A stretch of DNA of 64,000 bases from the sequence record OR413578.1, one strand, 5' to 3'. Each line of letters opens with the position of its first letter. The first letter of the stretch is position 1. Below are positions 26,275 to 42,427 of this stretch, piece by piece. The position numbers and the translations under genes were made by a program. Under the pieces are notes generated by a model that had not been told where the DNA came from, did no database searches, and saw only the letters and a program-made list of their open reading frames with translations.

Positions 26275-26325
26275 TAAATAAAAGGTACCTACCTCCCTTC
26301 GGGGAGGTAGGGCCTTTATTTTCTT
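26275..26325. terminator. bidirectional terminator closing the rSAM/fibre operon
   Basis: CCTACCTCCC-TTCG-GGGAGGTAGG (26288-26311) with A-rich 5' and T-rich 3' flanks. Confidence 0.9.
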
Positions 26326-26328
26326 TGC

Positions 26329-27000
26329 TTACATGCCGAGTGACTCGGACAATGTTTTTAATCCAGTGTAATCGCGCTTTTCAGCTAACTCACGGATTTG
26401 GCGTTTGTTATCTGCCATTGCTGAGTGCAACACTTGGTCACGTGCAACAATAGCGGCCAGCAACGCTTTACATTGGGCTACTGTAAACGGACTGTGCTTA
26501 GTATTCAGCGTATCGAGCCAGTATTCTGGTGCGGTATCCGCCTGAATATATTGACCGAGGATGGTACGCGACGATTCATCGGCTTGAAAGTGACTACCTT
26601 CAAACTCGATATAACCATGGCGCTCATCTTCGTAGCGGTGGTCGAGTTCCAACAGCATCTTCTGCACGTCTTCGTAAATGTAACGTGCGGTAGATTTCAG
26701 ATTCCCGCGAATTTCGTCGAGGTCAATCTCCAGCACATTAGCAATAAACTCTTTCGTGCGTTTCAATGTGAAGTTAGCTTCAATCTCCGACATCTCATAC
26801 AGCTTCATGCGTGCCAGGGCTTCTTTATCAGACATCCCTTCAATGAGATGGTAATGGAGCAGAGCGCAAAATCCGGTACGGCCCTGATCCTGTGCCCCGA
26901 TTCGTTCCATGAAATTGCCGTGTCGGTCAATCGGCAAATCGCGCTGGAAATAACGGGCACGGATCTCTTCGTTCGTTAAGCTTTTGTCAGTAACAGACAT
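26329..27000 (-). CDS. DUF4376-domain protein (tail-fibre assembly type)
   Basis: C-half FEGSHFQADESSRTIL..WLDTLN..LL..I..RDQ.LH..K.QI resembles DUF4376. Confidence 0.6.
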   Translation of the reverse strand: MSVTDKSLTNEEIRARYFQRDLPIDRHGNFMERIGAQDQGRTGFCALLHYHLIEGMSDKEALARMKLYEMSEIEANFTLKRTKEFIANVLEIDLDEIRGNLKSTARYIYEDVQKMLLELDHRYEDERHGYIEFEGSHFQADESSRTILGQYIQADTAPEYWLDTLNTKHSPFTVAQCKALLAAIVARDQVLHSAMADNKRQIRELAEKRDYTGLKTLSESLGM

Positions 27001-27542
27001 TCGTCCTCCTCAATCAGGCCAAGTTCTAACAACAAACCGAAGTCCAGCATCTGGAAGTCCTGATCGAGGTTACCGGCCCACAACAGAGAAATGTTGTGTT
27101 GCTCTTCTTCTTCCAACTGCGGGAGCAGATGTTCTTCGAAGATTTGACGCTCTGTGTAATAGGCGTCGACCGGATTATTGGAGCGTAAGTTACGAATACG
27201 CATACGCGGGAAAGACAAGCCCAAAGCCACTAAACTTTCAGGACTGGCTTCATCAATAGAGTGACGTAGCAGTTCGATTTTGTGGCGTGGGTATGCGAGC
27301 AATCGCTTCTCAAAGCCAGGGTTGCGCTTTTCGATTTCCGCGACAGACTCGTGTCCTTTCTCAACGCAGTAGACCGGGATCATCACATTCAGCCCGTATT
27401 TAATCAACAGGCTTTGGATTTCGTCAGTGAAGTCTTCCCCTGCCACAATTGCGTGCACATTGTACAATTTGCTTTTGCGCAGAAAGCGATCGACCAAGTG
27501 CAGTTTACGCTTCGTAAAATTGTGAATCAGTATTGACTTCAT
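26976..27542 (-). CDS. hypothetical protein in the rSAM cluster
   Basis: ATG 27542 after GGAG; overlaps both neighbours, suggesting translational coupling. Confidence 0.7.
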   Translation of the reverse strand: MKSILIHNFTKRKLHLVDRFLRKSKLYNVHAIVAGEDFTDEIQSLLIKYGLNVMIPVYCVEKGHESVAEIEKRNPGFEKRLLAYPRHKIELLRHSIDEASPESLVALGLSFPRMRIRNLRSNNPVDAYYTERQIFEEHLLPQLEEEEQHNISLLWAGNLDQDFQMLDFGLLLELGLIEEDECLLLTKA

Positions 27543-28833
27543 TCTGGGCTCCGTTTTGTAATTTTTCTGCTTCAGCACGTTGACGTACACAACGTGAACA
27601 GTAGCACATGGATTTATCATGCAAATCTGACGCGCGGGTCGTACCAGTTTTCTGATACCAGTATTCTGCCGCCATCAATTTCGCAGTAGTCCAACCGCAC
27701 TGGCGACGCTCAGCGTGATACGCTTTACGGTCTTCCAGTGTACCTTCACCGTTTTCGTACGATGCTGCTGCGCAGCTACCGCAGCTGTGTTTCATCGGAC
27801 ACCCTAAACAGGTTTCTGGGTAGTTGGTGTACTGCGTTTGAATCTCTTCTAACAGCTTACCACCGTCCAGGCTCACAAACTCACGACCGACCAGTTCTGC
27901 TACAGCAGAGCGGGAAGTTACCGTGGACATGAAACGGTTACAACCGTAAATCTTGCGATCAAAGCCGAGACAGGTCATGTGCGTCAACGTACCGCAGTAC
28001 GGTTTCAGGCGTTCTGGGTCGAGACGAACAGAGTCGTCATGTAAGAGTTTGTCACGCCAATCCGGGTCCCAAGTTGCCATAAAGTTCAGGCCATCCGGGA
28101 TGATGTGCGTAATCGTGTTACGCGGGTTGGTGTGCAGACCCTTCTCAATCCAGTAGTCCATCACGTCCATCATCTGGTTCGCGATATCCAACGCCATATG
28201 GCGCGGCAGGATATCTTCGTACGTTACGTTACCAGAGATGGTACCACCGCCGGACATGTCAATTAACGATTTCATGCTGGCGGCATAGTGCGGCAATGTA
28301 TCGATCGTGAACGTCGCCTTTACGCCCAGCTCAGCGATGCCGACACTCTTCAGGTAATTGTAACCGCGTACCGCGGCTTCGTACGACCCTTCGCGCGTCG
28401 TGGTAAAGATACGATATTTGTCATGGACTTCAGGTAAACCATCGATGGAAACCCCAATAGACAGTTTGTCTTTCCAGCGCTCGATAATTTCTTTGTTCAG
28501 TGGACGGTCCAGTAGCGTACCGTTCGTGGAGATACTGAACATATACGGGCGATTGTGTTCTGCACATAACTTCTCTGCGGTTTCAAAGGCCGCCAAAAGA
28601 AGTTTAGGCTGCATGAACGGCTCACCACCGATGATATCGATGATGACTTCAACGTTCGGGATATCTTTATCACGCTCGAAACAAGCGTGGATAAAATCAA
28701 TCACGTCTGCTACTTTGTTGTTACGCGGATATTTACGCTCGTAGCAGTATTCGCAGTCCAGGTTACATGACAAGTTAGTCACAACCTGATACGTGCGTGG
28801 TGTGTACTGGATTTGCTGTTCGCTATTACTCAT
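27505..28833 (-). CDS. radical SAM/SPASM peptide maturase
   Basis: CNLDCEYC (CxxxCxxC), IGGEPF, STNGTLL, SIDG..HD..R; SPASM-type YCG..IYGCNRF..CLGCPMKHSCGSC..C. Confidence 0.92.
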   Translation of the reverse strand: MSNSEQQIQYTPRTYQVVTNLSCNLDCEYCYERKYPRNNKVADVIDFIHACFERDKDIPNVEVIIDIIGGEPFMQPKLLLAAFETAEKLCAEHNRPYMFSISTNGTLLDRPLNKEIIERWKDKLSIGVSIDGLPEVHDKYRIFTTTREGSYEAAVRGYNYLKSVGIAELGVKATFTIDTLPHYAASMKSLIDMSGGGTISGNVTYEDILPRHMALDIANQMMDVMDYWIEKGLHTNPRNTITHIIPDGLNFMATWDPDWRDKLLHDDSVRLDPERLKPYCGTLTHMTCLGFDRKIYGCNRFMSTVTSRSAVAELVGREFVSLDGGKLLEEIQTQYTNYPETCLGCPMKHSCGSCAAASYENGEGTLEDRKAYHAERRQCGWTTAKLMAAEYWYQKTGTTRASDLHDKSMCYCSRCVRQRAEAEKLQNGAQNEVNTDSQFYEA

Positions 28834-29740
28834 TGTTCGCCGCCCGTTTACGCTTAGCAGAAATTACACGGTTGATGTAGTTATACGCATCAACGCCGAT
28901 AGAACGCGCCAGGCGATTACAGCCGACTTCCAATATCTCTGGGGCGTTCTGAATTTGCTCCTGCGTACCGTCGGCGTTAAGCCACAGCACTTCACTGCAC
29001 GTGTTGCACTCGGTATCGAACATTTTACTGATCGCAAGCCCACATTCAGAATCGTTCTGCATGTTAAGGCGTTCGATATTGTCGAGTATTTTCCAATACC
29101 CGTACATGAAGTTCATGACGTGGTCTGGCGATAACGGTTTCGGCATCATCGCATCAAACAACAACGACACACCACCTGGACGGTAATGATAGATTGCTCG
29201 GTGCAGCTCGATGAAATCTTCGTACCAGCGTTTATCACCTAACTGGTCACGCGTCATCACACCCCAGGTGTAATAGTTGTCCAGCTCGTACAGCACTTCC
29301 AGCGCTTCGTGATTACCACCGTTTACAAAGTTCATAAACGGACGTTCCGACTTCTTGTAGCCGTCAATGGACACAAAGATAAGGTCGAACTGTTTCAGCA
29401 ACGGCAGATGTGATTTACGCATCTTTAAACCGTTGGTGTACATGTGATGACGGAGGTTCGGATGAGACTCCTTCAACTCGTTCACGAAGTCTTCAATCTT
29501 ACGCTGCGCTAACAGCGGCTCACCGCCCGTCCAATGAATCTCACCGATATCCGGATTCTTCTCTAAAATCGAGAGAATCTCTTCACGTTGAAACTCACGA
29601 GAAGTATCTTCTCTATCCATGTAATAAGCCCCTCCACAGAAGCTACAGTCTAAGTTACACTTAGAAGTTGCGACAACCGACAGAATTGACGGTTTGTCGT
29701 ACAGTTCAGACGAGATCCTGGATTCTACTTGATCTGTCAT
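28826..29740 (-). CDS. second radical SAM enzyme (short, degenerate auxiliary domain)
   Basis: CNLDCSFC, TGGEPLL, YTNG, SIDG; C-terminal CNTC..LNADG..GCNRL; ATG 29740 after GGAG (track start 29776). Confidence 0.88.
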   Translation of the reverse strand: MTDQVESRISSELYDKPSILSVVATSKCNLDCSFCGGAYYMDREDTSREFQREEILSILEKNPDIGEIHWTGGEPLLAQRKIEDFVNELKESHPNLRHHMYTNGLKMRKSHLPLLKQFDLIFVSIDGYKKSERPFMNFVNGGNHEALEVLYELDNYYTWGVMTRDQLGDKRWYEDFIELHRAIYHYRPGGVSLLFDAMMPKPLSPDHVMNFMYGYWKILDNIERLNMQNDSECGLAISKMFDTECNTCSEVLWLNADGTQEQIQNAPEILEVGCNRLARSIGVDAYNYINRVISAKRKRAANNE

Positions 29741-29762: not shown

Positions 29763-30650
29763 TTAAATATAATCAATGGCGAATAAAGGATCTTCGTCTA
29801 CATTAGCGCCAGGCACCAATAGCATCGGGTCGTGATAGGCAGCTAAAATTTTGTTCAGGTCGGCGTGTCTTTCGTTCAGGCGTTTCAAATCGGCCAACGT
29901 TACCGAACGACCACGAATCTCAGAAACAGCTTCTGCTTCTTCTTTCGTTAAATCCACCTTCGTTAAGAGGAAACTTACCAGCTTACTCAAATCCGCTTCT
30001 GTCGCCGGGTAATCCCCATATCGGGTTTGAACCAGGTGTTGCATCCACGGCTTACGAATACGTTTGGTGATTTCGAAATCGTCAGTCAGCGCATACCAGA
30101 CAGAACGCTTTTTATCCCACACGAACTTATAGCTATACGCCATCATGTCCGCTAAACGGGTGATGCCGAGTTCTTTATACCCCTCGATATCGATGTATGG
30201 TTCGGTGTCGAAATACGTTTCCGTATCGGCAGGTACCAGTACAAAGTAGTAAGGGAACGAGCCCAGATAGTCCGGACTCCACCAACGGCGCGCCATCGGT
30301 TTTGCTTCAAGTTCGTCAAACGGTGTAAACATCAGTTCTAAATCGACGCTGTTGTTCAAAATCCCTTCACTGAAGAAATACTTACCGTCGACTAACACGC
30401 CACGAGAGTTACCATCGCCGTTAAAGATAACGATGGCCTCTGCAACCATATCACGGATCTTAAACGTATTTTCTACGGTGTAGTTCTTCTTGTCGGTCAA
30501 GAAGCGACCACGAACCTTTGGCCACTCACCAGGAATCTGTGCAATCAGTCTGACTTTGTCAGCAAGGTGTGCACGCACTGAATCTGGGGAAGATAGATGC
30601 AGCGGGTGGTTGAATGTGGTTTTATACGCAAGATGCAAATCGTTTTTCAT
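29763..30650 (-). CDS. hypothetical protein between the Cys-rich peptides and the rSAM genes
   Basis: ORF track 295 aa; GGAG RBS; no recognisable motif. Confidence 0.75.
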   Translation of the reverse strand: MKNDLHLAYKTTFNHPLHLSSPDSVRAHLADKVRLIAQIPGEWPKVRGRFLTDKKNYTVENTFKIRDMVAEAIVIFNGDGNSRGVLVDGKYFFSEGILNNSVDLELMFTPFDELEAKPMARRWWSPDYLGSFPYYFVLVPADTETYFDTEPYIDIEGYKELGITRLADMMAYSYKFVWDKKRSVWYALTDDFEITKRIRKPWMQHLVQTRYGDYPATEADLSKLVSFLLTKVDLTKEEAEAVSEIRGRSVTLADLKRLNERHADLNKILAAYHDPMLLVPGANVDEDPLFAIDYI

Positions 30651-30672
30651 TTAATACTCCGAACGTTTTCTG

Positions 30673-30879
30673 TTATCGATTCCCCGCTCCACGGCTACAG
30701 CTTCCGCTGCAGGACCAGCTACACCCACCATTACAGTTATAGTGAGAAAGCGGTAAGCCAGCCAGGTTATTTGTGGTCGACACGGTGCCCTGGTTAGCGA
30801 TATAGTTGTTTGCCTGTGCGGTTGTAATGTAACCTTCTGCCGTAACGAGACGGTTTCGAATAGTCTTGAGACTGATCAC
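30673..30879 (-). CDS. Cys-repeat precursor-like peptide P3 (short, 4 Cys)
   Basis: GTG after GGAGG; leader homologous to P1/P2; core CNGGCSWSCSGSC. Confidence 0.8.
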   Translation of the reverse strand: MISLKTIRNRLVTAEGYITTAQANNYIANQGTVSTTNNLAGLPLSHYNCNGGCSWSCSGSCSRGAGNR

Positions 30880-30894
30880 ATAAGCCTCCGTCAG

Positions 30895-31299
30895 TTAGGA
30901 GTTAGGACCTGAACAACCACCAGAGCACGCACCTGAGCAGTTTGCGGAGCAGGATTTACCACAACCCCCAGAACAGCTGCCTGTGCACGTGCCGCTACAA
31001 CCACCAGAGCACGAAGAGCTACAGCCCGTGCAGCTGCTGCTACAGCCTGATACACAGTTTGCCGAACAAGTCGACCCACAACCACCTGTCGCAGATCCTG
31101 TGCAGCCGCCAGAGCAACTTGAGCAGCTAAAAGAACACGTACCACCACAGTCGTAGTGCGAACGACCTTGACCTGCGAACAAGTCAGCGTTATTCGTAGC
31201 TTTATTGCGAATGTAGTTTTGCACATTCGTGGTATTCTTTAGAGCGTTTGCATCGATCGTGTTTAATCGGTTATTCAGTTCTTTTAATCCAATTGCCAT
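30895..31299 (-). CDS. CxxxC-repeat precursor-like peptide P2 (20 Cys)
   Basis: AGGGGG RBS; about 50-aa leader, then a C/S/G/T-rich core with Cys mostly every 4th residue. Confidence 0.88.
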   Translation of the reverse strand: MAIGLKELNNRLNTIDANALKNTTNVQNYIRNKATNNADLFAGQGRSHYDCGGTCSFSCSSCSGGCTGSATGGCGSTCSANCVSGCSSSCTGCSSSCSGGCSGTCTGSCSGGCGKSCSANCSGACSGGCSGPNS

Positions 31300-31309
31300 T
31301 TAATCCCCC

Positions 31310-31702
31310 TTAGCGACCTGAACAGCCGCCGGAGCAGGCCCCGGAACAACTGGAAGAACATGAGCCACCGCAACCACCTGTGCAGTTACCGGTACAGCTA
31401 CTACTGCAACCACCAGAACAACCAGAGCAACCAGAACAGTTACCGCCACACGTCGAAGAACAGCTACCGATACAAGAAGCAGAACAGCTTCCTGAACAGC
31501 TCGAACAGCCGTGCGAGCAACCGTTAGAGCATGTCCAAGAACATGTCCCGCCGCAATCTAGCTGTGCTTTCGTCCAACCCCCAAATCGGTCTGCTGCATT
31601 ATGGGCTTTAGAGGCCACTTGCGCCTCGATGCGGGGGCCTGTCGCCATGTTAGCTTCGACTATCTGGACGCGGTTTCTGACGTCTTTAATAGATATCGCC
31701 AT
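31310..31702 (-). CDS. CxxxC-repeat precursor-like peptide P1 (21 Cys)
   Basis: AAGGA RBS; about 49-aa leader, then a CGGTCSWTCSNGC.. repeat core. Confidence 0.88.
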   Translation of the reverse strand: MAISIKDVRNRVQIVEANMATGPRIEAQVASKAHNAADRFGGWTKAQLDCGGTCSWTCSNGCSHGCSSCSGSCSASCIGSCSSTCGGNCSGCSGCSGGCSSSCTGNCTGGCGGSCSSSCSGACSGGCSGR

Positions 31703-31767
31703 TACGCTTCCTTAAAAAGTAGAACGAGCGGACTATGTCCATAAACATAGTCCGGCTCGTAAACAAG

Positions 31768-32970
31768 TTACTTAGTACCCGCTTCAGCTTGAACATCGTC
31801 GCGCGAGGTGAGGCTGTTGTTGACGTGAACAGCAGCCTGCACAACACCTCCATACTGTTTATGGAGGTAATTCGGGTGTGGGTTATCCGCAGCCGCATGG
31901 TTCGCCAGATTCTGGTTTGCCTGCGAAATTGCGTTGGTGTTGTTTATAACCTGAGTTTTAAGACTGTTGATTTGTCCTTGCAGGTTATCAATTTGCTGTT
32001 GGAAGTCTTTGCCCTGATTCTCAAGATCCGTGACGCGCTGATTTGTTTCATTCAGTGCAGACTGAAGATCGTTAACCATCTTCTGTAATTGCAACACCAG
32101 AGAATTAAGGTTAGCTAATGCTAACGACATTTTCTGGTAATTTTGAGCAACCACGTTAAGCTGGTCGTTCCACGCGGCTAACGAAGCCACAATTGCATCG
32201 ATGCGTTGCCCCAACGCCGTGTCTGCTGCTCTTAAGTCGCCGATATCTTTGATAGTGGCGTCAATGGCAGTCTGTACACTTTGAATCAGGGCACGAATCT
32301 CCGTCTCCGTCAGGCCATTAACCTGATGAATGTCGAGATTGTGTACGTTACCTTCGGCGTTGATGTGTGTATTTAAGGCGTCGAGGAAGTCGTTTCTCAG
32401 ACCGTCCAGAATACCTTTAATTTCTTCCAGCTGTACTGCAGAGCCGGAGTTAATCGCATCTTTAATCCCCGCGAGTACGGTAATGATATACTCAAAACCG
32501 TAGATATCGCCAAGGTCTTTATACGTCGGGGCGGACGGGAACGTATCGGGTACGTTTCGAAGATCCTTGAAGTCCACCACACGGTCTTCAATTTTCAGCG
32601 ACGCAATCGCTTGTCGGATGCCTTCGACGTTCGCGGACTGAAAACCACCAACGACTTGCGCAGAGACTTCGATATCAGTAGGAATGGCCGAGTTAGTTAC
32701 CACCACACCCATGACCACTTCGCGGTTCTTGGTCATTTTCTGATATGCAGTATGTGCAAAAATCAGTTCGTAGTCTGTGCCGCGTTTGTACGGGTAGACA
32801 CCTGGTTTATTCGCAGCTGCCAAGCGGAAGGTATCCGCGTAGAAAGCTCCGTCAGGAAAAGCAAAAGCCCGGTTAACTTTACCAGAACCTAACGTAATAC
32901 GCCGTGTAACGGCGTTCGACGTTAATGTCCCGGTAAGGTCGAGCGGGTACTGATGAATGATTTCGGCCAT
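31768..32970 (-). CDS. short fibre protein: attachment-type N-domain + long coiled coil
   Basis: ATG 32970 after AGGAG; YPLDLTG..R..AFY..GTDYEL N-domain shared with the three giant genes; Q/N/L heptads; HAAADNPHPNY motif. Confidence 0.7.
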   Translation of the reverse strand: MAEIIHQYPLDLTGTLTSNAVTRRITLGSGKVNRAFAFPDGAFYADTFRLAAANKPGVYPYKRGTDYELIFAHTAYQKMTKNREVVMGVVVTNSAIPTDIEVSAQVVGGFQSANVEGIRQAIASLKIEDRVVDFKDLRNVPDTFPSAPTYKDLGDIYGFEYIITVLAGIKDAINSGSAVQLEEIKGILDGLRNDFLDALNTHINAEGNVHNLDIHQVNGLTETEIRALIQSVQTAIDATIKDIGDLRAADTALGQRIDAIVASLAAWNDQLNVVAQNYQKMSLALANLNSLVLQLQKMVNDLQSALNETNQRVTDLENQGKDFQQQIDNLQGQINSLKTQVINNTNAISQANQNLANHAAADNPHPNYLHKQYGGVVQAAVHVNNSLTSRDDVQAEAGTK

Positions 32971-33017
32971 TGCCAAACTCCTTTGATTGGGGCTTCCTTG
33001 CCCCATAGCGCTATCTG

Positions 33018-36000
33018 TTAGGTACGGAACATAAGATTGACCTGGATAATATCAGGCTGTTGACGTCCTCTCTCGTTCACCCAATCGTGCGCAATCGTTA
33101 ACGTAAGATCGTCGCCATCCCACGCCACGATCGGTGGTGGGAATAAACCCTGAGCGCCCGTGGTAACAACCGGGATTGCACCTGTCACATTCGTAAACGT
33201 GTAGCTACGACTGTTCAGAACAACTGGTGTGCCGTTGGTCTCTCCCGGCTGTGGTAAGATTTGAATCTTACTATCCGAAAGATCGGTGGTGATTGGTAGA
33301 CCCCCAGCGTCCGTGAAAAGCCAAGAGCAAATATGCTGGTTAGCTGTTTCGAGCGCTGAAGAACTTACCGCCGCGACAAATGTAAAGGTGCACGGCACGC
33401 CTGCTGGCAGAGAGTGCTGTTTGTGGTGCACGGTATGTGGTGACGGCAATAACACTTCTGGATTTTCATCAATGTTAACATCCGTACCTTCCGCCTCGAT
33501 GTTGTAGAAAAAGCCATCCACCGCCTCCCATGGGGCAACGTGAACATTAAAGGTCGTTTCTACTCCCGGTGTACCTGGGACGACGAATTTACTTTGCACC
33601 ACCACCATCAGGTTTGTTGAGGTCGGAGCGAAAGCGGGCGTTGGAATACCTACCCACTCCATACCCAACGATGTCGCTTCACTGTTCTCATCGGCCGTTA
33701 CCGTCGCAATTGTTGTAGGATGTTTCCAAAACGCCCCCGACTTGTTTGCCTGAGTAAACGCCGGCAAAGTTTTCAAGCCTTCGAAACGTTTGGACACCAT
33801 CGCTTTACCACGACTCTGTGCGTCAGATACGGTATAAAGCAACTGACTATCCAGATAGCCTTTCGTAGCATCGATCGACAAAGGACCCATCGCTTCTTTA
33901 CGCAAGGGTGCCAGTCTGCCCGTTGCTGCATCCCTTCCCACTTCCACATCATGCTTATTCTCAACCGCCGCATGTTCCAACAGTTGTTTCACCGCCCCCA
34001 ATCGCTTAGCATGTACGACGTTAGTCTCGACGACTCGCGACGAGCCCGTTTTAACATACCCGATATAGAGTTCCGTTTCAGTGTCTGGATGTTGAATCAC
34101 GTCCATTACGTACTTCGGTGTACCATTTTCTACCTTGGCGTGCAGGTAGAATGTTCGGTTCTGATGGTTTGTTGGAAATGCTGCGCTGAGGTCAATATAC
34201 CACGTAGGCAGCCTATAAGTGCTCGAGCCGAAACGCAGGTCAACTTCCTCAGTCACATATACCAGCCAACCTTCGGCTGTTTCCACACCAGCAATGACGA
34301 CCGATTCAGTCGGGCCACTAAAATTAGGAGCCGCGACAAAATCACTCGACGACATTGCGATACCACCACAATAGACGTAGTCGAGAGATGAGTTGTGTAG
34401 CATCACCTGATCACGATGAGCCAGATAAGCTGGGCTGACTGGAGTGTGGGATGGTGCCATGCGTCCAATGCCGTGTGGAGCAGAAGAACGCGTCCAGGTA
34501 CCGTTAGACAGCGTAAGACCAACACCGTAGTTAAGCGCACCCAAGTCGCCAATTTGGCGCAAGGTTAACGTGTGTGGAAGATACAACCCGAACTGAGTAC
34601 CATCTACTGACACCAGTGTAGGTTGTCCCGGCCGGCGTGTTTTTCCTCCCGTTATCTCGCCCAACGTAGCATAGTTCAAGCCATAGTCGAGGTTGTTATA
34701 GAAGTCAAACAGTGCCAATATCGCTGCTGGGAATGTTACCTGCCCGTTGCTGATTGTTGGTTTCAGTGTAAAGTAGTAGATATCCAACAAGTTAACATTG
34801 TTCACAGTACGCGTACATGCTACTTGTGCTAATGTAAGCGGCGTGGCTGTACCGATACCGATGAACCAAACGGAGAACAGTGCCTTTCCTGCGTTATTTG
34901 CGGCAAGAATATATTCCGAAGCATAACCATTCGCAGCGCCTGCCGGTGCTCCGTCGATGATCATCTGCTTCATCTTATCCCATTCAGCTTGTGACAGCGT
35001 CAATCGATCGGCATGAATCGTGAAAGTGCCGGAAACGTTGTGGTAAGGGAATGTTTCTGGTCCTGTGCAATACCAGCCGTTTAACTCTGTACCAGGCGAC
35101 GTCGGTGTAACAATGTGGCACATCTGCGACAGATTCTCATACGTGAGAGAATCTACTAGACGACGATTGTTAGTTGGGCCATACCCCGCCTTACCTGAGT
35201 AAGTGGTGTTCGGATCAAACTCAACTTCAATTGCCAAGCGGGTACGCGGCTGTGACAACCAGATAAGTCTGGAATTCGCTCCCAGAGTCAGCGGATACGC
35301 CATACCCAGCTCGTAGATAGAACCACGACCTTGGTTTAACATTACCGCACTAAAACTTCTGGCAGTGAAGTTGTAGTCGCACGACAGGTACTCGTACCAA
35401 CTCACACCGTCATCTAACGTTGTAATCGTGACATAAGGCATTAGGTCGCGATCGCCTGCATGTCCTTGCGAAACGATATACTTGTCTTGCGATGTTGCAA
35501 AGGTTCGGTTATTAGCTTGACCTTCGCCCCATTTCCAGCTCGGAATCCCAATCTCAGCGCCACCGTTATAACGAACCGTGGTAAGATCGGCCACAATAGG
35601 GAATCGATCAGCACCTTCCAGCGTTATCGTCATTGAACTACAATCAACAACAAAGCTTGACACCCATTGTTTAAAGTTAATAGTTTGCCCTGTAGTAGAA
35701 GCAAACCAAACCGTTGGAGTTAAACCAACACGAAAGTTCAGCCCATCCACACCAATCGCGTGATTACATTCCGGACCATGGACGAAATTTCGCGCACTAT
35801 TCCACTTCGCCGATGCGTCTGCGTAGATTTGTGTTACTGGCGCTACCAACACATCTGTATCAGAACGTTTCTGACCCTGACGCAAGTAGATATTATCTCC
35901 CGACGTTAACATCCCACCTGTTAACACATCCGCCACAAACGTGTTGCTACCACCCAGATTAAGTTCGTCGAGTGCGATGCTACGCATACTCACGAAATAG

Positions 36001-38201
36001 TCACCGGGGGTAAGCACAGTACGGAGCAGATAAACCCGCTCGTTGCAAACGATCAAATCGTTTGTTGATGGATCAGCAACCCATGGAGCGGTTGTAATCA
36101 CACCGGCCGCGTTACCATTTCGGTAATCGCCCAACTGAACTTTAACAACACGATGATGTTTTGCATGGTCAATGGTGCCGTCAAAGATGACCAGGTAGTA
36201 CGCACCGTCACTGCCTAAGCAGATCATTGCATCTGTACCGGTAATCACAATAGCAACCAGATTCACCCCAGGATACGCCGACATTCCAGCGGGTCGATAA
36301 CGTACGGACGTCTGCTGCATGTTCGTCAGCGTGTTGTCCGCGGTTACATCTGCGTAAGCGTAATAGATAGCCCAGTCAGCAGGGGCGTTACCGTTGGAAC
36401 CATTACGCAACGAGTAAACCTTACCAGCCTCGTAACGCGCCAAACCTTTCTGCCAGGTTTGGTTTTTGGTATACCCTTCGTAGTTCCCCTGGACTGGTAT
36501 AGGCAAGAAGTTATTGTTGCCGTACGATGATCCGCCGACAGTCCATGCGGGCAACAGCGTAGCAATCTTGTCATTCAGTGTGTCAATCTTTTGTTCAAGC
36601 AAGAAGCCCTGACGCGAAGTGACCATCTTATCCGAGGTAGTGTCGATTGCATCCCACAGTTTAGCCAAACCTGTAACAGACGTGGATGCGTACGGCACGT
36701 TATCGAGATCTGCAATGGTGTGGGTGTGCGTTGTAAGCGCTTTGCCTGATAGCACGGTGCGCAACGCATTAGTAACCGGTTTCTCCAGCGGTCCGGTATT
36801 GTCCATTTTCTCAATACCGAAATCTGCCGCGGTTAAGGTCAGATGCATCTGCCCGTTTGAATCTAATACAAACCCTTTACCATTGACTGTATACGTGTCG
36901 TCCACATATCCGTCGAGTTTGTTCTTCAAGTCAGTAACAGCTTTTTGGGAAATCGCTGTGGACGCTGCAGCGGACGCCGAAAGGTTAGTAATCGCAAACA
37001 AACCCTGCACAGTTGTGGTTGCTGCAGGCAGCTCCGCATTCATGTAAACTTTGTTTGTTTCTTTACCAGAGCCATAAATCTTCAACGTGTCGCTGGACTT
37101 GAAGTAGGCGTTTGCTGGAAGTATCTTCACCGAGGTCAAGTACATCTTAACCATATCCGGCGTAACGAGATACACGCTGTTATACACAGGTGCAAGCACA
37201 CCTGCATCATAAGCGCCCCACTTGTCACCTGCTTTACCCGAGTGAACCCAAAGCGTGTTCAGACCAGCACTGAACTCCGTAGCGATACCCGGTTCGTTGT
37301 TATCCTGGTCAGCTTTTAATACCAGCGGTTTTGTCGAGGTGATGATGAACTTCTCACCTTTCATGCTGATAACGTGACCAGACGTTGTTTGGAACGTAAT
37401 CGCGTCGTTATTCAGAACACGCATACGGCCCAGTAAATCACCCAGGGTATTATCCAGAAGCATGTCAACGTGTTTCTGTTGGATGCCACTGGTAGACATT
37501 AACGTCACTAACTCTGCCAGTGTACGTCCAAACGCTTTAGTCGCATCCACGGCCTTACCGAGCACAGGGAGTGCGCCAATGTCACCGCAGGTGTAACCAT
37601 GTGCATTTTTAATCAGGTGGTGTTGATACATTTCGTCATCAAACACCTGCTTACCGTTCTGATAAATCAAATCGGTAACTTCGGCAAATGCCTCATCCAG
37701 TTCGTGAGCGCGCTCTAAAATACCCAGACGGATATCTTCCAACGCCTTTACGATTTCATCGCGAAGAATCGCTTCTTCGAGATCTTTTGGCGGGTCGATT
37801 GGCGAGATAATCGGCGGATATTTCATCAGCTCAGACCAATCGCAGTTGCGCGGGTCTTTCATATCCGTCTTAACCAGATACTTGCCGATTTCAGAAGCAG
37901 GGATGCGATACTGCCGACCAACCGACAACAACTCGTATTCTACCTCTGTGGCGTTCAGCAGCATTATGCTGCCGTATATTGCATCGTTCTCAGCCTCGGC
38001 TAATTCCTGGAAGTAATGTCCTAAGAAATAATCAAGACCTTCTATTAACTTGCGTTTGGTTCCGGTTGTTTTATCGGTAACGGTTAACGTTAACCCGATG
38101 CGATAGAACGGTGCTTCGACGGGAATGACCGTCGAATAACGGTTCGGGTAAGTAGCGGTACTGAGGGTACCGTTAAACTGCGCCGCATCTTCTCTCGGCA
38201 T
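33018..38201 (-). CDS. giant tail fibre/baseplate protein (~1727 aa)
   Basis: ATG 38201 after AGGAG; shared N-domain (APFY..GLDY), H..KNAH, ATTTVQGLF, THTHT, ASTSVTGLAKL fibre motifs. Confidence 0.75.
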   Translation of the reverse strand: MPREDAAQFNGTLSTATYPNRYSTVIPVEAPFYRIGLTLTVTDKTTGTKRKLIEGLDYFLGHYFQELAEAENDAIYGSIMLLNATEVEYELLSVGRQYRIPASEIGKYLVKTDMKDPRNCDWSELMKYPPIISPIDPPKDLEEAILRDEIVKALEDIRLGILERAHELDEAFAEVTDLIYQNGKQVFDDEMYQHHLIKNAHGYTCGDIGALPVLGKAVDATKAFGRTLAELVTLMSTSGIQQKHVDMLLDNTLGDLLGRMRVLNNDAITFQTTSGHVISMKGEKFIITSTKPLVLKADQDNNEPGIATEFSAGLNTLWVHSGKAGDKWGAYDAGVLAPVYNSVYLVTPDMVKMYLTSVKILPANAYFKSSDTLKIYGSGKETNKVYMNAELPAATTTVQGLFAITNLSASAAASTAISQKAVTDLKNKLDGYVDDTYTVNGKGFVLDSNGQMHLTLTAADFGIEKMDNTGPLEKPVTNALRTVLSGKALTTHTHTIADLDNVPYASTSVTGLAKLWDAIDTTSDKMVTSRQGFLLEQKIDTLNDKIATLLPAWTVGGSSYGNNNFLPIPVQGNYEGYTKNQTWQKGLARYEAGKVYSLRNGSNGNAPADWAIYYAYADVTADNTLTNMQQTSVRYRPAGMSAYPGVNLVAIVITGTDAMICLGSDGAYYLVIFDGTIDHAKHHRVVKVQLGDYRNGNAAGVITTAPWVADPSTNDLIVCNERVYLLRTVLTPGDYFVSMRSIALDELNLGGSNTFVADVLTGGMLTSGDNIYLRQGQKRSDTDVLVAPVTQIYADASAKWNSARNFVHGPECNHAIGVDGLNFRVGLTPTVWFASTTGQTINFKQWVSSFVVDCSSMTITLEGADRFPIVADLTTVRYNGGAEIGIPSWKWGEGQANNRTFATSQDKYIVSQGHAGDRDLMPYVTITTLDDGVSWYEYLSCDYNFTARSFSAVMLNQGRGSIYELGMAYPLTLGANSRLIWLSQPRTRLAIEVEFDPNTTYSGKAGYGPTNNRRLVDSLTYENLSQMCHIVTPTSPGTELNGWYCTGPETFPYHNVSGTFTIHADRLTLSQAEWDKMKQMIIDGAPAGAANGYASEYILAANNAGKALFSVWFIGIGTATPLTLAQVACTRTVNNVNLLDIYYFTLKPTISNGQVTFPAAILALFDFYNNLDYGLNYATLGEITGGKTRRPGQPTLVSVDGTQFGLYLPHTLTLRQIGDLGALNYGVGLTLSNGTWTRSSAPHGIGRMAPSHTPVSPAYLAHRDQVMLHNSSLDYVYCGGIAMSSSDFVAAPNFSGPTESVVIAGVETAEGWLVYVTEEVDLRFGSSTYRLPTWYIDLSAAFPTNHQNRTFYLHAKVENGTPKYVMDVIQHPDTETELYIGYVKTGSSRVVETNVVHAKRLGAVKQLLEHAAVENKHDVEVGRDAATGRLAPLRKEAMGPLSIDATKGYLDSQLLYTVSDAQSRGKAMVSKRFEGLKTLPAFTQANKSGAFWKHPTTIATVTADENSEATSLGMEWVGIPTPAFAPTSTNLMVVVQSKFVVPGTPGVETTFNVHVAPWEAVDGFFYNIEAEGTDVNIDENPEVLLPSPHTVHHKQHSLPAGVPCTFTFVAAVSSSALETANQHICSWLFTDAGGLPITTDLSDSKIQILPQPGETNGTPVVLNSRSYTFTNVTGAIPVVTTGAQGLFPPPIVAWDGDDLTLTIAHDWVNERGRQQPDIIQVNLMFRT

Positions 38202-38296: not shown

Positions 38297-41200
38297 CTAA
38301 GAGGCCCACTCACCCGAGTTGTTGCCTTCGTTTCTACGTTCAGTATCCAACGTTTGTAAAATCCAATCCCATGTCCTGGTGGGGATGTGGAATGGATTAC
38401 GCTTCTCAATGAGAATCGTCTCGCCACCAGTGCGAAGTTCCACCGGTGTCGTTTCAGTAATCACGAACGTCGGATTACCACTACTGCCCACGCCATTAAT
38501 AGTGAACTTCGCTTGCAGCGGCGGCACAGAACCTTCCGGAGGCACGAACACGATGTGAATTGGCTGCATCGGTTTCGTGCGGGCAAGAGTCCCAGATATC
38601 TGAACAGCTGTTGTCGATGCACTGAAAGGTATAACATTGCCCGGAATTTTCTCACTACCCACGATGATATATCCTGGGTAGTTAGAGAGCATTGTCCCAT
38701 TTACCGACACAAAACGCTCATTTTGAGTTGGGCGATAAGCCCGCATAAAGCCGTACTTCCATTCACCACCGTTAGACGTATAGTCTGCAGGAGCCGACTC
38801 AAGTAGCGGAGCACCACGTTTCTGCAGCCCTTTGTAAAACGGTGCGGGGAGTTTACCGTTCGGTGCAAGTTCCGGATAACCCTCACTTGCAGCAGACATC
38901 GTGATGTATTCCGTAACCGGGTTATCGACGTTATCTCCAAAGTTCGCGAACGCGACGGTTGATATCGACATCTCCTCATGCCCAGAAGACTGGCTGTCCG
39001 GAGAACGCTCAATATACGACTCAAATAGCGAGCGTAGATAATGGAAACGATTTAAATCTACTTCTGTTGTGGAAGGGTCCATCAAACCGTGGTTGATTGT
39101 GACGCCTTCACCAGTTTCGATGCCAGTAACACTAATCGATAAAGCACCACCTTTAAAATAATCAATCGCGTCAAACGGAAGGTCGTATTCTATCTCACGA
39201 ATAGTTGCCGAAGCCTGGCCGCCTATCTTACTAATCGACGATATTCGCAGTATCTGCGTATCAACAATATAGCGATAACGAATAAGCCAGCGCGAACCAA
39301 TGGCTGCGAACTCGCTAGCGATTGAAACCGGGAGATAGTCTAAACAGTCAGGCGACTGAACATCCACGCTCTTGATTACACGAGGTGCATCAACCAGCGT
39401 ATTAGTAACGCTGGATTGTGTGGTGGCAATTCTTCCGGTTGGTTTATCGTACGGCGCTGCAATAAAGCCGCAGTTTAAACTGGTGTGGGAGTTACTCCAC
39501 CGCAGGACTCTGGTTTTACCTTTCCCATCAGCAGAAGGGGTCATGAAGTTTAATGAAACTTCGACGTCCGAGGTTTTTGGGACTTCAGGATAATCAGTGT
39601 CGATTACCACCGAACCCTCGAATGTCGCCATACCATTTTCTTTCGGGTTGCTTGGTGTAAACCAGCAATACGGGGACGCGTTTTCAGTGGAAACAACCGC
39701 CGCAAGAAGAATCCTGAGCGAGGTGGCACTTACGAATTTATAATCAAATAACCCACGATCTAAACGAACGAGGTTATCCCCAGAAACAGACGGGTTAGTT
39801 GGATACGCATACAGCCATTGTTTAGGTAATGGATCAACCTTATTCAACGGCAGCATTTTCGGGTTATCCGTCAACGACCAGTCGGTGTTACTCACCCCGT
39901 GTGCTAGACGTGTTTCGAAGTGCCGTTTAAGTTCGGACGCCATGCCAAAATCAAACGTCGTTTCAAACTCGTAAGTCGTGCCTGCAACCAATCCCGCGTC
40001 AGGGACATCGATGTGGCCGATATAGCCGCGTTCCAAGTTAATACCTTCCGTGTCCACAATAGGTTCGGCGCGCGAATATAACGCATCGGTTATCATGTTT
40101 ACGTAAAGGTAATGCCTTAAACCGTTCGGAGTCTTAACAAACTCCTGAAGGCGAGCAACCTTGGTGTTTTTATCAGAGGCCCCAACCGCAAAGTCACCGT
40201 CGTAAATTGTGAAACGAATTGCGGCTGCTTTAGCGCTATCGTTACACTCGGCACGGAATGCTAAGCAGTGTTGCTTCCACCCCTCCTTGACCTTCGCCTC
40301 CAGATACCCCGCTTCTGTAATACCCGCACCGATAATTTCACCGTCCAGATAAACAGAAACAGCACCACCGCCACGAACCCAAATCCGCAGCTTACCAGAG
40401 TCGCAACGAACCCACGTTTTCGCCAAGAGGTTAACGACCGACAAATCGCCCATTCCGGTTGTCGTTAACCCAATCTGCGCACCGTAGTTCGTTTCCGGGA
40501 CGGCAACCTCAAACCCACTAAAATCAATACCGGCACCGGTATTGATTACCGCGTTCTGCCACGTTCTTTCCATACGGTTATCTGGAGAGAACCACTGGAA
40601 CATCGGCGTGGTTTGCAGGTCTATCGAACCAGATACCGTCCCCTCTTTACGTGCACCATTTAACAGATAGAAATAATTCAAATCCGTTACGGCGAGTGTG
40701 GTACGTGTAGATCCCACAGTCCAAGTCTTACCACGCACAGCGGCAAAATCGGTCACGGAATCCTCTTTCGCGTTTGCTAGCGCAGCTGCAACTACGTCTA
40801 AACGTTTTGACAAATCGTTCAGAACGTTCGGGGCAACGCCGCGATTATCCGACAAGCCGTTTAGGTTGGTAGAATATCGAGCGATACCGGGAACTGTTTG
40901 AGAAGCCGTTGGGATCTGTAAATCGGCGAAGTTGTGATGGTGGCCTTTATCACTAAGACCGGTAACTGCTTCTGCCAACGCATCAGAAAGTGGTTTATCG
41001 ACGTCAGCTGTGTTATCAGCCAAGTCCAGACCCAAATCCTTTTTCGTTAGCGTTCGGCTACCAGTGTCCATCGGCTGGTTATTCAGCAGCGTTGTCTTCC
41101 TGACGTACGAAGACAGATCACCCTCGTACGGTAAGAGCGAAGCTGGGGTGGCTGCTTGTCCTTTGACTACATCGCTCGGCTTATCAGTTAGCGTCACAAC

Positions 41201-42427
41201 GCCGGGTTCAGAGGTCGTCGCGGGTTTGGCTGTGACCTTCCCGGTGACGGGATCGGCTTTTGACCCTTTACCCGTGAAAGTAATGCCGTTCACCCCGCTA
41301 ATGTACAGTTTGTTGTCATCCGGGTCAACGGTACCACCGCCGGTACCAGGGTCTTGTTGATAGCCCATGAGAGCAGTTGTGGTCAGTAACGTCGTACCAT
41401 TAAGCGTCAGCTTATCCATCCCCAAGGCACTGCCAGTCGACTCAATACGTAATGTATTGATGCCTGCTTTCCACTCCATAAACCGGACGGTTCCAGTAGT
41501 GTCGGCATACCCACACGCCAACACAACAGAGCCATTAGATTTAAGAGTGAATGCCTCAGCAGAGAACACAATTTCGGATTCACCAGCAGGAGAACGGAAC
41601 AGGGCACGAGTACCGGATATCGTCGCATTAAACACCCCTTTGGATTCTTTCGATACCCATTTAGAAATGTACTTGTCGATATCCGATTGTTGCAGACCCA
41701 GTGCACGGACCTCGCTGGTTAACTGACGCAACGTCTTTCCATACGCCAGGAAAGTATCTGGCGTTTTCAGGTTGACAGGATGCGCACCGGCCTGCGCCGC
41801 GGTAGTCCCATGAGGGTTAGTCGACGCAATGTGTCCGGGGTAGTTAAATGCGGCGATTTCAGTTCCTAAGCCCAAAACCGCATCTTTCAGCTCAGTAAGC
41901 TTTTCACGAATCTGCTCGTTGGCCGCCCCGGCATCTAACTCCACATCATGCACTGCAGAGGCAACATACTTTTTATTCAGCATGTCTGACCAAGCTACCG
42001 CTGCAGGGGTGGCTGGGTACAGGGAGGGTCGATTACCTAAAAGCAGCCAATCTGCAGCCGTTGGATTGTTGAGTGCCTTAATTAGCTCATCCAACATCTC
42101 AATCAAACCACTGTAAAACGTACCCCCAAGCATCTGGCCTTCAAAGACCACCGCACCACGCAGTTTAGGGTTAATAAGATGCACCCCGCAAAATACCGGG
42201 GTCGTCACCGAGTCGTCCAACGGTGTTAAAGCATACTCCAGCTCATAGTCCGTCCCGCGGGTAAGCGGTATGGACGAGCCGGCGAGCCTTACCACCAATC
42301 CTTCGAAAAACGGGCGATGATCTAGCATCACCACCCGATCGTTAGGATTGTCGGAGTCGATGATACGTTCCTCGATGAAGTGACACTCAGGATTTACACC
42401 CCGAGGATCGTAAGGATACGTTTTCAT
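38297..42427 (-). CDS. giant tail fibre/baseplate protein (1376 aa)
   Basis: YPYDPRG..RPFF..GTDYEL; HIASTNPHGTTAAQAGA; ATTSEPGVVTL; GHHHN. Confidence 0.75.
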   Translation of the reverse strand: MKTYPYDPRGVNPECHFIEERIIDSDNPNDRVVMLDHRPFFEGLVVRLAGSSIPLTRGTDYELEYALTPLDDSVTTPVFCGVHLINPKLRGAVVFEGQMLGGTFYSGLIEMLDELIKALNNPTAADWLLLGNRPSLYPATPAAVAWSDMLNKKYVASAVHDVELDAGAANEQIREKLTELKDAVLGLGTEIAAFNYPGHIASTNPHGTTAAQAGAHPVNLKTPDTFLAYGKTLRQLTSEVRALGLQQSDIDKYISKWVSKESKGVFNATISGTRALFRSPAGESEIVFSAEAFTLKSNGSVVLACGYADTTGTVRFMEWKAGINTLRIESTGSALGMDKLTLNGTTLLTTTALMGYQQDPGTGGGTVDPDDNKLYISGVNGITFTGKGSKADPVTGKVTAKPATTSEPGVVTLTDKPSDVVKGQAATPASLLPYEGDLSSYVRKTTLLNNQPMDTGSRTLTKKDLGLDLADNTADVDKPLSDALAEAVTGLSDKGHHHNFADLQIPTASQTVPGIARYSTNLNGLSDNRGVAPNVLNDLSKRLDVVAAALANAKEDSVTDFAAVRGKTWTVGSTRTTLAVTDLNYFYLLNGARKEGTVSGSIDLQTTPMFQWFSPDNRMERTWQNAVINTGAGIDFSGFEVAVPETNYGAQIGLTTTGMGDLSVVNLLAKTWVRCDSGKLRIWVRGGGAVSVYLDGEIIGAGITEAGYLEAKVKEGWKQHCLAFRAECNDSAKAAAIRFTIYDGDFAVGASDKNTKVARLQEFVKTPNGLRHYLYVNMITDALYSRAEPIVDTEGINLERGYIGHIDVPDAGLVAGTTYEFETTFDFGMASELKRHFETRLAHGVSNTDWSLTDNPKMLPLNKVDPLPKQWLYAYPTNPSVSGDNLVRLDRGLFDYKFVSATSLRILLAAVVSTENASPYCWFTPSNPKENGMATFEGSVVIDTDYPEVPKTSDVEVSLNFMTPSADGKGKTRVLRWSNSHTSLNCGFIAAPYDKPTGRIATTQSSVTNTLVDAPRVIKSVDVQSPDCLDYLPVSIASEFAAIGSRWLIRYRYIVDTQILRISSISKIGGQASATIREIEYDLPFDAIDYFKGGALSISVTGIETGEGVTINHGLMDPSTTEVDLNRFHYLRSLFESYIERSPDSQSSGHEEMSISTVAFANFGDNVDNPVTEYITMSAASEGYPELAPNGKLPAPFYKGLQKRGAPLLESAPADYTSNGGEWKYGFMRAYRPTQNERFVSVNGTMLSNYPGYIIVGSEKIPGNVIPFSASTTAVQISGTLARTKPMQPIHIVFVPPEGSVPPLQAKFTINGVGSSGNPTFVITETTPVELRTGGETILIEKRNPFHIPTRTWDWILQTLDTERRNEGNNSGEWAS

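Follow-up and report, generated by a model that had tools for sequence, protein, structure and literature searches.

The tail-fibre region of Salmonella jumbo phage SPLA1a (SPN3US-like) raises the question of whether three small proteins with a cysteine at nearly every fourth residue, encoded between tail-fibre genes and two radical-SAM (rSAM) enzymes, are precursors of a secreted antibiotic or parts of the fibre itself. We analyzed a window of 64,000 nt from record OR413578.1 and examined the three proteins, P1, P2, and P3, together with their relatives in other phages. A sequence-only reading had proposed that their 'leaders' look like coiled coils, that the proteins may dock onto the coiled-coil fibre encoded directly before them and present an rSAM-rigidified thioether or metal-binding Cys-ladder tip, and that the rSAMs would act as 'fibre maturases'. 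Every sequence statement on which this proposal was built proved correct. Its interpretation is partly supported, in that the central idea of fibre-associated structural proteins matured by the rSAMs, rather than a secreted antibiotic, is backed by strong comparative evidence that the sequence-only reading did not have, whereas several of its details are not supported or were not tested.

The three frames lie on the minus strand, with P1 (130 aa, 21 Cys) at 31310..31702, P2 (134 aa, 20 Cys) at 30895..31299, and P3 (68 aa, 4 Cys, GTG start) at 30673..30879. P1 and P2 consist of an N-terminal part of ~49 and ~50 aa, respectively, followed by a CXXX region, while P3 has the same N-terminal part plus only the first Cys motif. 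All three match phrog_6085 (1e-40, 3e-41, and 2.7e-24 for P1, P2, and P3). Their N-termini fit the pattern M(A)I(S/G)(L/I)K..(R/N)NR(L/V), and the hydrophobic residues assigned to an a/d heptad (I5, V8, V12, V15, and M19 in P1; L5, L8, L12, and I15 in P2; L4, I7, L11, A14, and I18 in P3) are correctly placed. Across 45 distinct N-termini, columns 1, 3, 5, 8, and 12 are hydrophobic in 98-100% and column 15 in 91%, indicating that an amphipathic helix is real. However, the conserved 3-4-3-4 pattern spans only about two heptads and single-sequence shuffles often reach the same score (P = 0.04, 0.19, and 0.38), so that a coiled coil is not demonstrated; the pattern speaks neither clearly for nor clearly against a trimeric or other oligomeric shaft, and no multimer prediction was made. 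In the Cys regions, about 83% of Cys-Cys intervals are 4 and most of the rest are 3, with Ser, Thr, or Gly at position +1 and mostly Gly at +2.

These frames are unannotated or mis-framed in public records, and the SPN3US annotation 'gp166' is a wrong-frame call that overlaps P2. Nevertheless, they are real genes. Each has a Shine-Dalgarno (SD) sequence, and synonymous sites are near saturation while the protein is conserved; P1 is under purifying selection, and for the P1 core against phage STsAS, pS is 0.76 and pN 0.02. P1 always has 21 Cys in 22 loci, P2 orthologs in 19 loci have 20-23 Cys, and P3 is conserved as a short form with 2-4 Cys in 22 loci. Each of the 19 jumbo-phage loci where all three could be scored has exactly one P1, one P2, and one P3, and the Cys regions measure 75-80 aa in P1 and 76-89 aa in P2. 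An apparent natural loss in ten SPFM phages, suggested by partial P2 matches and no gp163 hit, was rejected since these records read as ~60-nt blocks in reverse order, which is a database artefact.

The genes that precede P1 encode homologs of known or candidate tail proteins of SPN3US. The run starts with a gp169 homolog at 38297..42427 (-), whose SPN3US counterpart is a virion protein called a baseplate/tail-fibre candidate and is paralogous to gp168. It is followed by a gp168 homolog at 33018..38201 (-), a large tail-fibre/baseplate protein that is syntenic in all 21 related loci and is a tail protein in SPN3US by mass spectrometry and genetics. Next is a gp167 homolog at 31768..32970 (-), a 400-aa virion tail protein with an N-terminal domain like that of gp169, a long coiled coil, and a short C-terminal end, whose ATG at 32970 has a good SD sequence and which matches phrog_2163, a virion structural protein family (E 1e-108). 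Its residues 72-227 are 27% identical to gp169 residues 54-206, family hits over residues ~235-375 are only of the coiled-coil type, and it carries the H..DNPHPNY stretch near its end. In SPN3US, gp167 was detected in virions at SC/M 1.90 and was not assigned to the head. In contrast, there is no direct evidence that P1-P3 are in the particle. The published virion proteome, which lists gp167-170, was searched with annotations lacking P1-P3 and could not have detected them, and it neither supports nor refutes their presence in the particle; virions were not examined here for P1-P3. The same proteome did not contain gp161-gp165.

Downstream of P3 lies a set of enzymes and accessory proteins. The gp165-like protein at 29763..30650 (-) matches phrog_8030 and has no known function. 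Its AF2 model is confident (pLDDT 90.4) and predicts a new fold, with no neighbour in PDB or BFVD other than its own ortholog, such that a peptidase or RRE identity, which we had considered, found no support. It is related to the 238/242-aa proteins of the T7-like and P2-like cassettes described below (hhalign probability 78% and 93%), which match each other by blastp at 8e-35. The gp164 gene at 28826..29740 (-) encodes a short rSAM enzyme with CX3CX2C near the N-terminus (Radical_SAM 1.1e-15; phrog_1802) and no reported SPASM hit. Its counterparts are the 262-270-aa rSAMs and the N-half of a fused 668-aa rSAM of other phages. The gp163 gene at 27505..28833 (-) encodes a 442-aa radical-SAM/SPASM-type maturase that is the best-conserved gene of the cassette, with 63-100% identity across the 21 loci, and that is 34% identical over 403 aa to the C-half of the T7-like phage rSAM. 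The gp162 gene at 26976..27542 (-) encodes a 188-aa alpha/beta protein of unknown function (phrog_7988). Its AF2 model is confident (pLDDT 87.6) but gave no Foldseek hit below E 1e-3, and its best TM-scores are to beta/alpha barrels, including rSAM cores (best E 2e-3; rSAM ChlB, TM 0.54 at E 0.016), resemblances too weak to be used as evidence. The last gene, gp161 at 26329..27000 (-), encodes a DUF4376 protein (1.4e-9; 38.8 bits against a cut-off of 25) with a weak match to a PHROG 'tail protein' family (8e-4). A bidirectional terminator-like hairpin at 26288..26311, with a 10-bp stem of 7 G-C pairs and T runs on both strands, closes the operon, and no other strong terminator-like hairpin lies between it and gp167. 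The order gp168-gp167-P1-P2-P3-gp165-gp164-gp163-gp162-gp161 is intact in all 21 related jumbo-phage loci, which come from several genera. As the sequence-only reading had stated, no transporter, peptidase, or immunity family was found for any operon gene in Pfam, NCBIfam, or PHROGs. Sequence searches of PDB with gp167, gp165, P1, and the homolog P0014 gave only generic coiled-coil hits or nothing, and no relative with a solved structure exists for the Cys region.

A search for homologs in which the Cys repeat is fused to a fibre, one of the checks proposed with the sequence-only reading, came back positive. Homologs carry the same junction and Cys region behind bona fide fibre domains. Of the homologs, numbered here as in our set, P0006 and P0014 match tail-fibre family phrog_5073, P0106 is a tail fibre (6.5e-52) with collagen repeats (2e-21) and a C-terminal Cys block, P0107 has a T7-tail-type N-terminus (phrog_1640, 3.7e-31), and P0111 has a tail-collar fibre domain. 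Overall, 10 of 20 scanned N-extended homologs have tail-fibre-type domains from at least 7 PHROG families, and none has another functional category. P1-P3 themselves hit only phrog_6085 and carry no recognizable fibre domain, leaving it undecided whether they should be counted as homologous to fibre domains in their own right. The part called the 'leader' is an internal segment of the fused fibre proteins.

The gene also sits in the tail-fibre slot of five other phage types. It follows a short T7-tail adaptor in T7-like phages, lies directly after central tail fibre J in a lambda-like phage, and comes after the baseplate wedge and fibre genes in a P2-like phage. In two larger phages it is next to fibre-like genes, with weak tail-fibre/tail-assembly matches in one and a collagen-like tail fibre in the other. 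The same enzyme set travels with it. The T7-like 668-aa rSAM is a short rSAM joined to a gp163 ortholog (E 8e-57), and gp165-like proteins are present in these cassettes. In T7-like phages, the neighbouring 118/132-aa paralog has the same N-domain but a collagen-like repeat where the CXXX region would be. Two scans of bacterial genomes confirmed nothing. Literature searches found no paper linking rSAM enzymes to tail fibres or to CXXX repeats in phages, and the pSal-SNUABM-04 paper has no proteomics.

These results lead us to consider it somewhat more likely than not that P1, P2, and P3 are small structural proteins of the tail-fibre/baseplate apparatus, made from the same late fibre operon as gp169, gp168, and gp167, although expression timing was not checked against the SPN3US infection proteome (PMC6384053). 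Their first ~50 residues comprise an amphipathic helix, a conserved neck, and the invariant Cys-x-Gly-x-Cys-Ser-Trp junction, and most likely serve both as a handle recognized by the maturation enzymes and as an oligomerization or docking segment that stays on the protein. In this view, the ~77-residue Cys region of P1 and P2 is the substrate of a conserved phage cassette of gp165-like protein, short rSAM gp164, and SPASM-type rSAM gp163. By analogy with the nearest characterized enzymes, the cassette would install a ladder of covalent, probably thioether, cross-links inside the reducing cytoplasm, and the result would be a thin, rigid, redox-inert rod that takes the place of the collagen-like triple helix of paralogous fibre proteins. 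The reality of the genes, their family relations, synteny, fusions to fibre domains, and the absence of export or cleavage genes rest on the analysis itself, whereas virion location, retention of the N-terminal part, thioether chemistry, partnership with gp167, and a possible P1/P2/P3 hetero-oligomer are our inferences; neither docking on gp167 nor the choice between thioether and metal chemistry was examined. More tentatively, it is possible, though we would not call it likely, that a widespread and undescribed class of phage receptor-apparatus parts exists, namely 'cysteine-ladder' fibre rods whose shafts would be covalently laddered inside the cell by the three-protein cassette and exchanged among myo-, sipho-, and podoviruses like other fibre modules, with P1, P2, and P3 of the SPN3US group forming a defined hetero-oligomer carried by gp167.

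Other explanations are conceivable but appear unlikely. In a classical RiPP natural product, the N-terminus would be a disposable leader, removed by a host or unrecognized protease after cross-linking of the core, and the cores would be released at lysis to act outside the particle, for example as an antibacterial or a metal-binding peptide. The relationship of gp163 to peptide maturases, the several precursor-like paralogs with a shared N-terminal motif and Cys-rich 'cores', the fit of the ~50-residue N-terminal part to a RiPP leader, and the short peptides with Tat-type signals among bacterial relatives are all compatible with this, and a lytic phage needs no exporter. On the other hand, no peptidase, RRE, or immunity gene was found, and the gp165 and gp162 models give no protease or RRE fold. 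The 'leader' is as constrained as the core and is internal to fibre proteins elsewhere, the fixed P1/P2/P3 set and fixed Cys number across genera are unusual for precursor families, and the cassette lies inside tail-fibre modules in six phage types. Slightly less likely still, the modified proteins might act inside the cell as a scaffold, template, chaperone, or ruler for folding or attaching gp167-gp170 without being kept in the particle. Tail-fibre modules commonly include chaperones, and the operon also holds non-virion helpers, with gp161, gp162, and gp165 absent from SPN3US virions. However, the presence of the Cys region in the same polypeptide as fibre attachment and shaft domains in other phages is hard to reconcile with a discarded factor, unless it is cleaved off.

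It is also possible, but again improbable, that the Cys rows bind metal ions or Fe-S clusters in a fibre or in the cell without covalent modification, with the rSAMs having another or only an auxiliary role. Cys makes up about 25% of the region with small residues in between, and the Tat-type signals on bacterial relatives suggest export of a folded or cofactor-loaded domain. In contrast, rSAM genes accompany the Cys protein in every context examined, and the status of gp163 as the most conserved gene of the cassette argues that it acts on these proteins. Finally, the possibility that the frames are mere products of low-complexity GC-rich repeats, raised by the fact that other frames of the same DNA are also open, is refuted by the protein-level conservation with near-saturated synonymous change, the SD sequences, the conserved N-terminal part, the orthologs in every relative, and the dedicated PHROG family.

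If the fibre hypothesis is true, radical-SAM peptide chemistry, known from antibiotics and cofactors, is also used to build virus particles, which would be an enzyme-dependent, post-translational cross-linking step in tail-fibre assembly and probably a new use of a RiPP-like system. It would give a function to the two conserved rSAM genes of SPN3US-like phages, and to an uncharacterized bacterial family, the CXXX-repeat targets, whose members include giant surface proteins with 100-160 Cys. It would also add three missing genes to the annotation of a model jumbo phage and show that its virion proteome may be incomplete. A rationale is at hand, since disulfides cannot form in the reducing cytoplasm where phages assemble, whereas rSAM-made links can.

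Among known systems, the closest are the CXXX-repeat peptide/radical-SAM maturase systems of bacteria (TIGR04114, TIGR04115, and Pfam PF27846). These share tandem Cys-Xaa-Xaa-Xaa repeats with Ser, Gly, or Thr in between and a nearby SPASM-type rSAM; gp163, for which TIGR04115 is the best family match (E 3e-36), lies within 2 kb of its Cys-repeat target here, and the gene is adjacent in every other context read. However, scores fall below both curated cut-offs, with P1, P2, and P3 at 19.6, 17.1, and 13.7 bits against 20 for TIGR04114 and gp163 at 125.6 bits against 350 for TIGR04115, indicating distant relatives rather than equivalogs. PF27846 was not scored on P1-P3 but is precomputed on many homologs. 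The phage versions add a second short rSAM and a gp165-like protein, lie in tail-fibre modules, carry a conserved junction motif, and are often fused to fibre domains, whereas the bacterial ones have Tat-type signals or sit at the end of giant surface proteins, and no characterization of the bacterial family or its chemistry was found in the papers searched.

The thioether-forming rSAM/SPASM maturases PapB (ranthipeptide freyrasin) and CteB (SCIFF/thermocellin) also act on Cys-rich substrates. The alignment of gp163 to PapB (E 1.1e-32) covers residues 22-357 against profile positions 12-319 of 330, and Cys-rich C-terminal motifs are visible in its translation, consistent with an rSAM core plus a C-terminal SPASM region, although the Pfam SPASM model itself reported no hit. 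By sequence, the nearest solved structure is 5WGG (E 3e-10), deposited as 'Radical SAM domain protein', which is CteB. However, gp163 starts its CX3CX2C motif at residue 23 and aligns with 5WGG from residue 106, and it lacks the N-terminal ~85-100 residues that precede the rSAM core in that structure. In PapB, binding of the leader to the RRE is thought to dominate recognition (PMC12373016), but no RiPP recognition element was found on gp163 or as an RRE-like neighbour of the gp165 and gp162 models, and no leader peptidase or exporter was found in Pfam, NCBIfam, or PHROGs for any operon gene. The acceptor residue four positions on is itself Cys here, not Asp, and the product chemistry, which was not measured, is unknown. 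QhpD, an rSAM that cross-links a protein subunit (QhpC) of quinohemoprotein amine dehydrogenase, is a precedent for a SPASM rSAM making intraprotein thioether links in a protein that stays part of a larger assembly; gp163 hits this family at 3.8e-15, but the relation is distant and the substrate and context are different. Split and modular phage tail fibres (T7 gp17-type adaptors, collagen-like fibre proteins, and fibre assembly proteins with DUF4376) share the arrangement of a short adaptor with an attachment domain plus coiled coil followed by small distal fibre proteins and helpers, as seen both here, from gp167 through P1-P3 to the DUF4376 gene, and in the T7-like loci, yet no known fibre is described as needing radical-SAM enzymes. 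The HK97-type capsid chainmail shares the concept only, that of covalent cross-linking used to stabilize a virion part; HK97 links are autocatalytic isopeptide bonds in the head, whereas here dedicated enzymes would act on a tail-fibre part.

The region 26000-33100 is 100% identical to Salmonella phage SPLA1a and 97.9% identical to SPN3US, a 240-kb jumbo myovirus of the genus Seoulvirus. On the minus strand lie, in order, P1 (31702-31310, 130 aa), P2 (31299-30895, 134 aa) and P3 (30879-30673, 68 aa, with a GTG start). They follow gp167 (32970-31768) and are succeeded by gp165 (30650-29763), the rSAM gene gp164 (29740-28826), the rSAM gene gp163 (28833-27505), gp162 (27542-26976) and gp161 (27000-26329). 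In SPLA1a, nothing is annotated between the 400-aa "virion structural protein" and the next hypothetical protein. In SPN3US, the only call there is gp166 (and its RefSeq copy), a 111-aa ORF at 30891-31226 (minus strand) in a different frame from the conserved P2. P1 and P3 are not annotated in either phage, and proteomic databases built from these records lack all three proteins. Pfam searches found Radical_SAM in gp164 and gp163 and DUF4376 in gp161, while only coiled-coil-type families were found for residues 235-375 of gp167. A strong bidirectional hairpin at 26288-26311 closes the operon, and no comparable terminator lies inside it. The gp160 homolog (25720-26247, plus strand), which is one of the most abundant head proteins of SPN3US (>300 copies estimated; PMC5694885), converges on the same terminator.

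The observation made in the sequence-only reading was borne out by our analysis. Each P gene has a Shine-Dalgarno sequence, and against relatives, synonymous sites are near saturation while the proteins stay conserved (for the P1 core against STsAS, pS is 0.76 and pN 0.02). The N-terminal part is about as constrained as the Cys part. These are therefore real genes missed by annotation. The N-terminal hydrophobic pattern that had been described is also correct. In 45 distinct N-termini, columns 1, 3, 5, 8, and 12 are hydrophobic in 98-100% of cases and column 15 in 91%. However, the 3-4-3-4 run covers only about two heptads and single-sequence shuffles match it often (P = 0.04, 0.19, and 0.38). 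The segment is a conserved amphipathic helix and not a proven coiled coil. In the Cys regions, Cys occurs every fourth residue in about 83% of intervals, with Ser/Thr/Gly next and mostly Gly after that. NCBIfam places gp163 nearest to the "CXXX-repeat target" maturase family (TIGR04115, 3e-36), although its score of 125.6 bits is below the cut-off of 350, and PapB, a thioether-forming ranthipeptide maturase, comes next (1.1e-32, near full length). P1-P3 touch the CXXX repeat model just under its cut-off, and PHROGs groups them in phrog_6085, of unknown function. By sequence, the closest solved structure to gp163 is 5WGG (CteB). The alignment starts at residue 106 of 5WGG, so gp163 lacks the N-terminal extension that holds the peptide-recognition element there.

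Twenty-one loci from cultured phages (Seoulvirus, Erskinevirus, and Derbicusvirus among them) and uncultured viral contigs keep the order gp168-gp167-P genes-gp165-gp164-gp163-gp162-gp161, with gp163 as the best conserved gene (63-100% identity). Each of the 19 genomes where all three P genes could be scored has exactly one P1, one P2, and one P3. P1 always has 21 Cys in 127-131 aa, P2 has 20-23 Cys in 130-142 aa, and P3 is always the short form, with 2-4 Cys. The Cys regions of P1 and P2 are nearly the same length. In the P1/P2 pairs of the window and of loci L010-L029, the last ~24 residues of these regions are more alike within a genome (mean identity 0.57) than between genomes (0.35), suggesting gene conversion or co-evolution of the two paralogs. 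We infer that a fixed, non-redundant triad with fixed length looks more like subunits of a structure than like interchangeable precursors. The public records of ten Salmonella phages (SPFM15, LR535913.1, and, with the same pattern, SPFM1, 5, 6, 7, 8, 9, 10, 12, and 14) read as if ~60-nt blocks were stored in reverse order. The gp167- and gp165-like ORFs translate as ~20-aa blocks of the SPN3US proteins in reversed block order and the description field is "XXX.", which looks like a database artifact and not biology.

The main new evidence comes from relatives outside the jumbo phages. Homologs with the Cys repeat fused to a fiber protein had been named in advance as a test of the fiber idea, and such proteins were indeed recovered. 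A search with P2 found proteins in which the same junction (Cys-x-Gly-x-Cys-Ser-Trp) and Cys region follow a ~100-aa N-terminal domain that matches tail-fiber PHROGs. The P-family profile aligns to those proteins from profile position 8, and the jumbo-phage "leader" therefore corresponds to an internal segment of them. An exhaustive profile search gave 524 relatives. Among the N-extended ones scanned, homolog P0106 is a tail fiber (6.5e-52) with Pfam Collagen repeats and a C-terminal Cys block, P0107 starts with a T7-tail-type domain, and P0111 has a tail-collar fiber domain. In all, 10 of 20 have tail-fiber-type domains from at least seven PHROG families, and none has another functional category. 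Eight homologs (P0087, P0088, P0090, P0093, P0096, P0097, P0117, and P0150) are giant proteins (1461-1803 aa) with ~1000-aa N-terminal parts. The three scanned (P0087, P0093, and P0117) contain Listeria-Bacteroides repeats. All eight have C-terminal CXXX blocks of about 100-160 Cys and look like bacterial surface proteins with an enormous Cys ladder.

The genomic contexts of these relatives were also examined. In two T7-like contigs, the gene order is tube, nozzle, internal proteins, a short T7-tail-fiber N-terminal adaptor (180-229 aa), a 118-132-aa protein, the CXXX protein, then rSAM genes and the terminase. This T7-like gene order sits, in L004, on a contig of 87.7 kb, about twice the usual T7-like genome size, which may be a concatemer assembly or a larger relative. 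The small neighboring gene in the T7-like phages is a paralog of the CXXX protein's N-domain and carries a collagen-like Gly-X-Y run where the CXXX run would be, suggesting that the two repeat types play equivalent shaft roles. In a lambda-like contig, the CXXX gene directly follows central tail fiber J (phrog_31, 3.5e-57) and is itself followed by an rSAM. In a P2-like contig, the order is baseplate wedge, fiber gene, a 401-aa collagen-like plus CXXX protein, short rSAM, a 242-aa protein, SPASM rSAM, and tape measure. In two kinds of larger phage, the CXXX gene and rSAMs lie next to fiber-like genes, with weak tail-fiber/tail-assembly PHROG matches in one and a collagen-like tail fiber in the other. 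In locus L037, a glycosyltransferase gene (6862-7977; phrog_3408, 5e-66) lies between a 982-aa collagen-like tail fiber and a 527-aa protein with 111 Cys, followed by two rSAMs; fiber glycosylation may occur in the same module. The called genes of L031 and L033, the contexts of homologs P0025 and P0012, do not translate with code 11 because of in-frame stops, and these CXXX plus rSAM contigs probably come from stop-codon-recoded phages. In P0025, the Cys block is N-terminal and a helical domain follows.

The enzymes of these loci are related as well. The T7-like 668-aa rSAM is a fusion of a short rSAM and a gp163 ortholog. Its short rSAM part resembles those of the lambda-like and T7-like loci and weakly resembles gp164, while its gp163-like part is 34% identical over 403 aa (E 8e-57). 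The 238-aa and 242-aa proteins of the T7-like and P2-like cassettes are 35% identical to each other (8e-35) and match the gp165 family profile at 78 and 93% probability. The traveling unit is therefore a CXXX fiber protein, a short rSAM, a gp165-like protein, and a SPASM rSAM. The predicted model of gp165 is confident (pLDDT 90.4) and shows a fold with no neighbor in PDB or BFVD beyond its own ortholog. The model of gp162, an alpha/beta protein, is also confident but shows only weak barrel-like resemblances. Its best TM-scores are to beta/alpha barrels, including radical-SAM cores (ChlB and viperin), yet all E-values are above 1e-3 and the protein has only two Cys and no cluster motif; it may be a degenerate rSAM-like domain. 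Neither gp165 nor gp162 looks like a peptidase or a recognition element.

In SPN3US, gp167, gp168, gp169, and gp170 are virion proteins not assigned to the head, and gp167 has a spectral count per mass of 1.90, above the 1.00-1.41 of gp168-170 (PMC5694885, Supplementary Table 1). In addition, gp168 is a tail protein (PMC5105663). In contrast, gp161-gp166 were not detected in the virion data (PMC5694885, Supplementary Table 1). The true P frames were not in the annotation and contain few Lys/Arg, so this says nothing about them. The N-terminal domain of gp167 is shared with gp169 and is followed only by a coiled coil and a short end. In this respect, gp167 resembles the short adaptors of the T7-like loci, which are likewise an attachment domain plus a helical stretch, followed by separate small fiber proteins.

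Taken together, the reading we favor, with moderate confidence, is that P1-P3 are structural parts of the fiber apparatus and that their Cys ladders are cross-linked by the cassette before assembly. Thioether chemistry is inferred from the nearest characterized enzymes, and docking on gp167, retention of the N-terminal part and a P1/P2/P3 hetero-oligomer are likewise inferences. Among the alternatives, it is conceivable but unlikely that the proteins are a released RiPP; a discarded assembly factor is slightly less probable, and an unmodified metal-binding ladder is the most doubtful of the three. The interpretation offered in the sequence-only reading is thus supported in part: its direction is right and now rests on comparative evidence, whereas its specific claims of a coiled coil, docking, and a tip function have not been tested. 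The union of these elements as a fiber maturation cassette across phage morphotypes appears to be undescribed, as we found no paper connecting rSAM enzymes with tail fibers or CXXX repeats in phages and none characterizing TIGR04115. The enzyme and repeat families are known from bioinformatics, and so are fiber modules.
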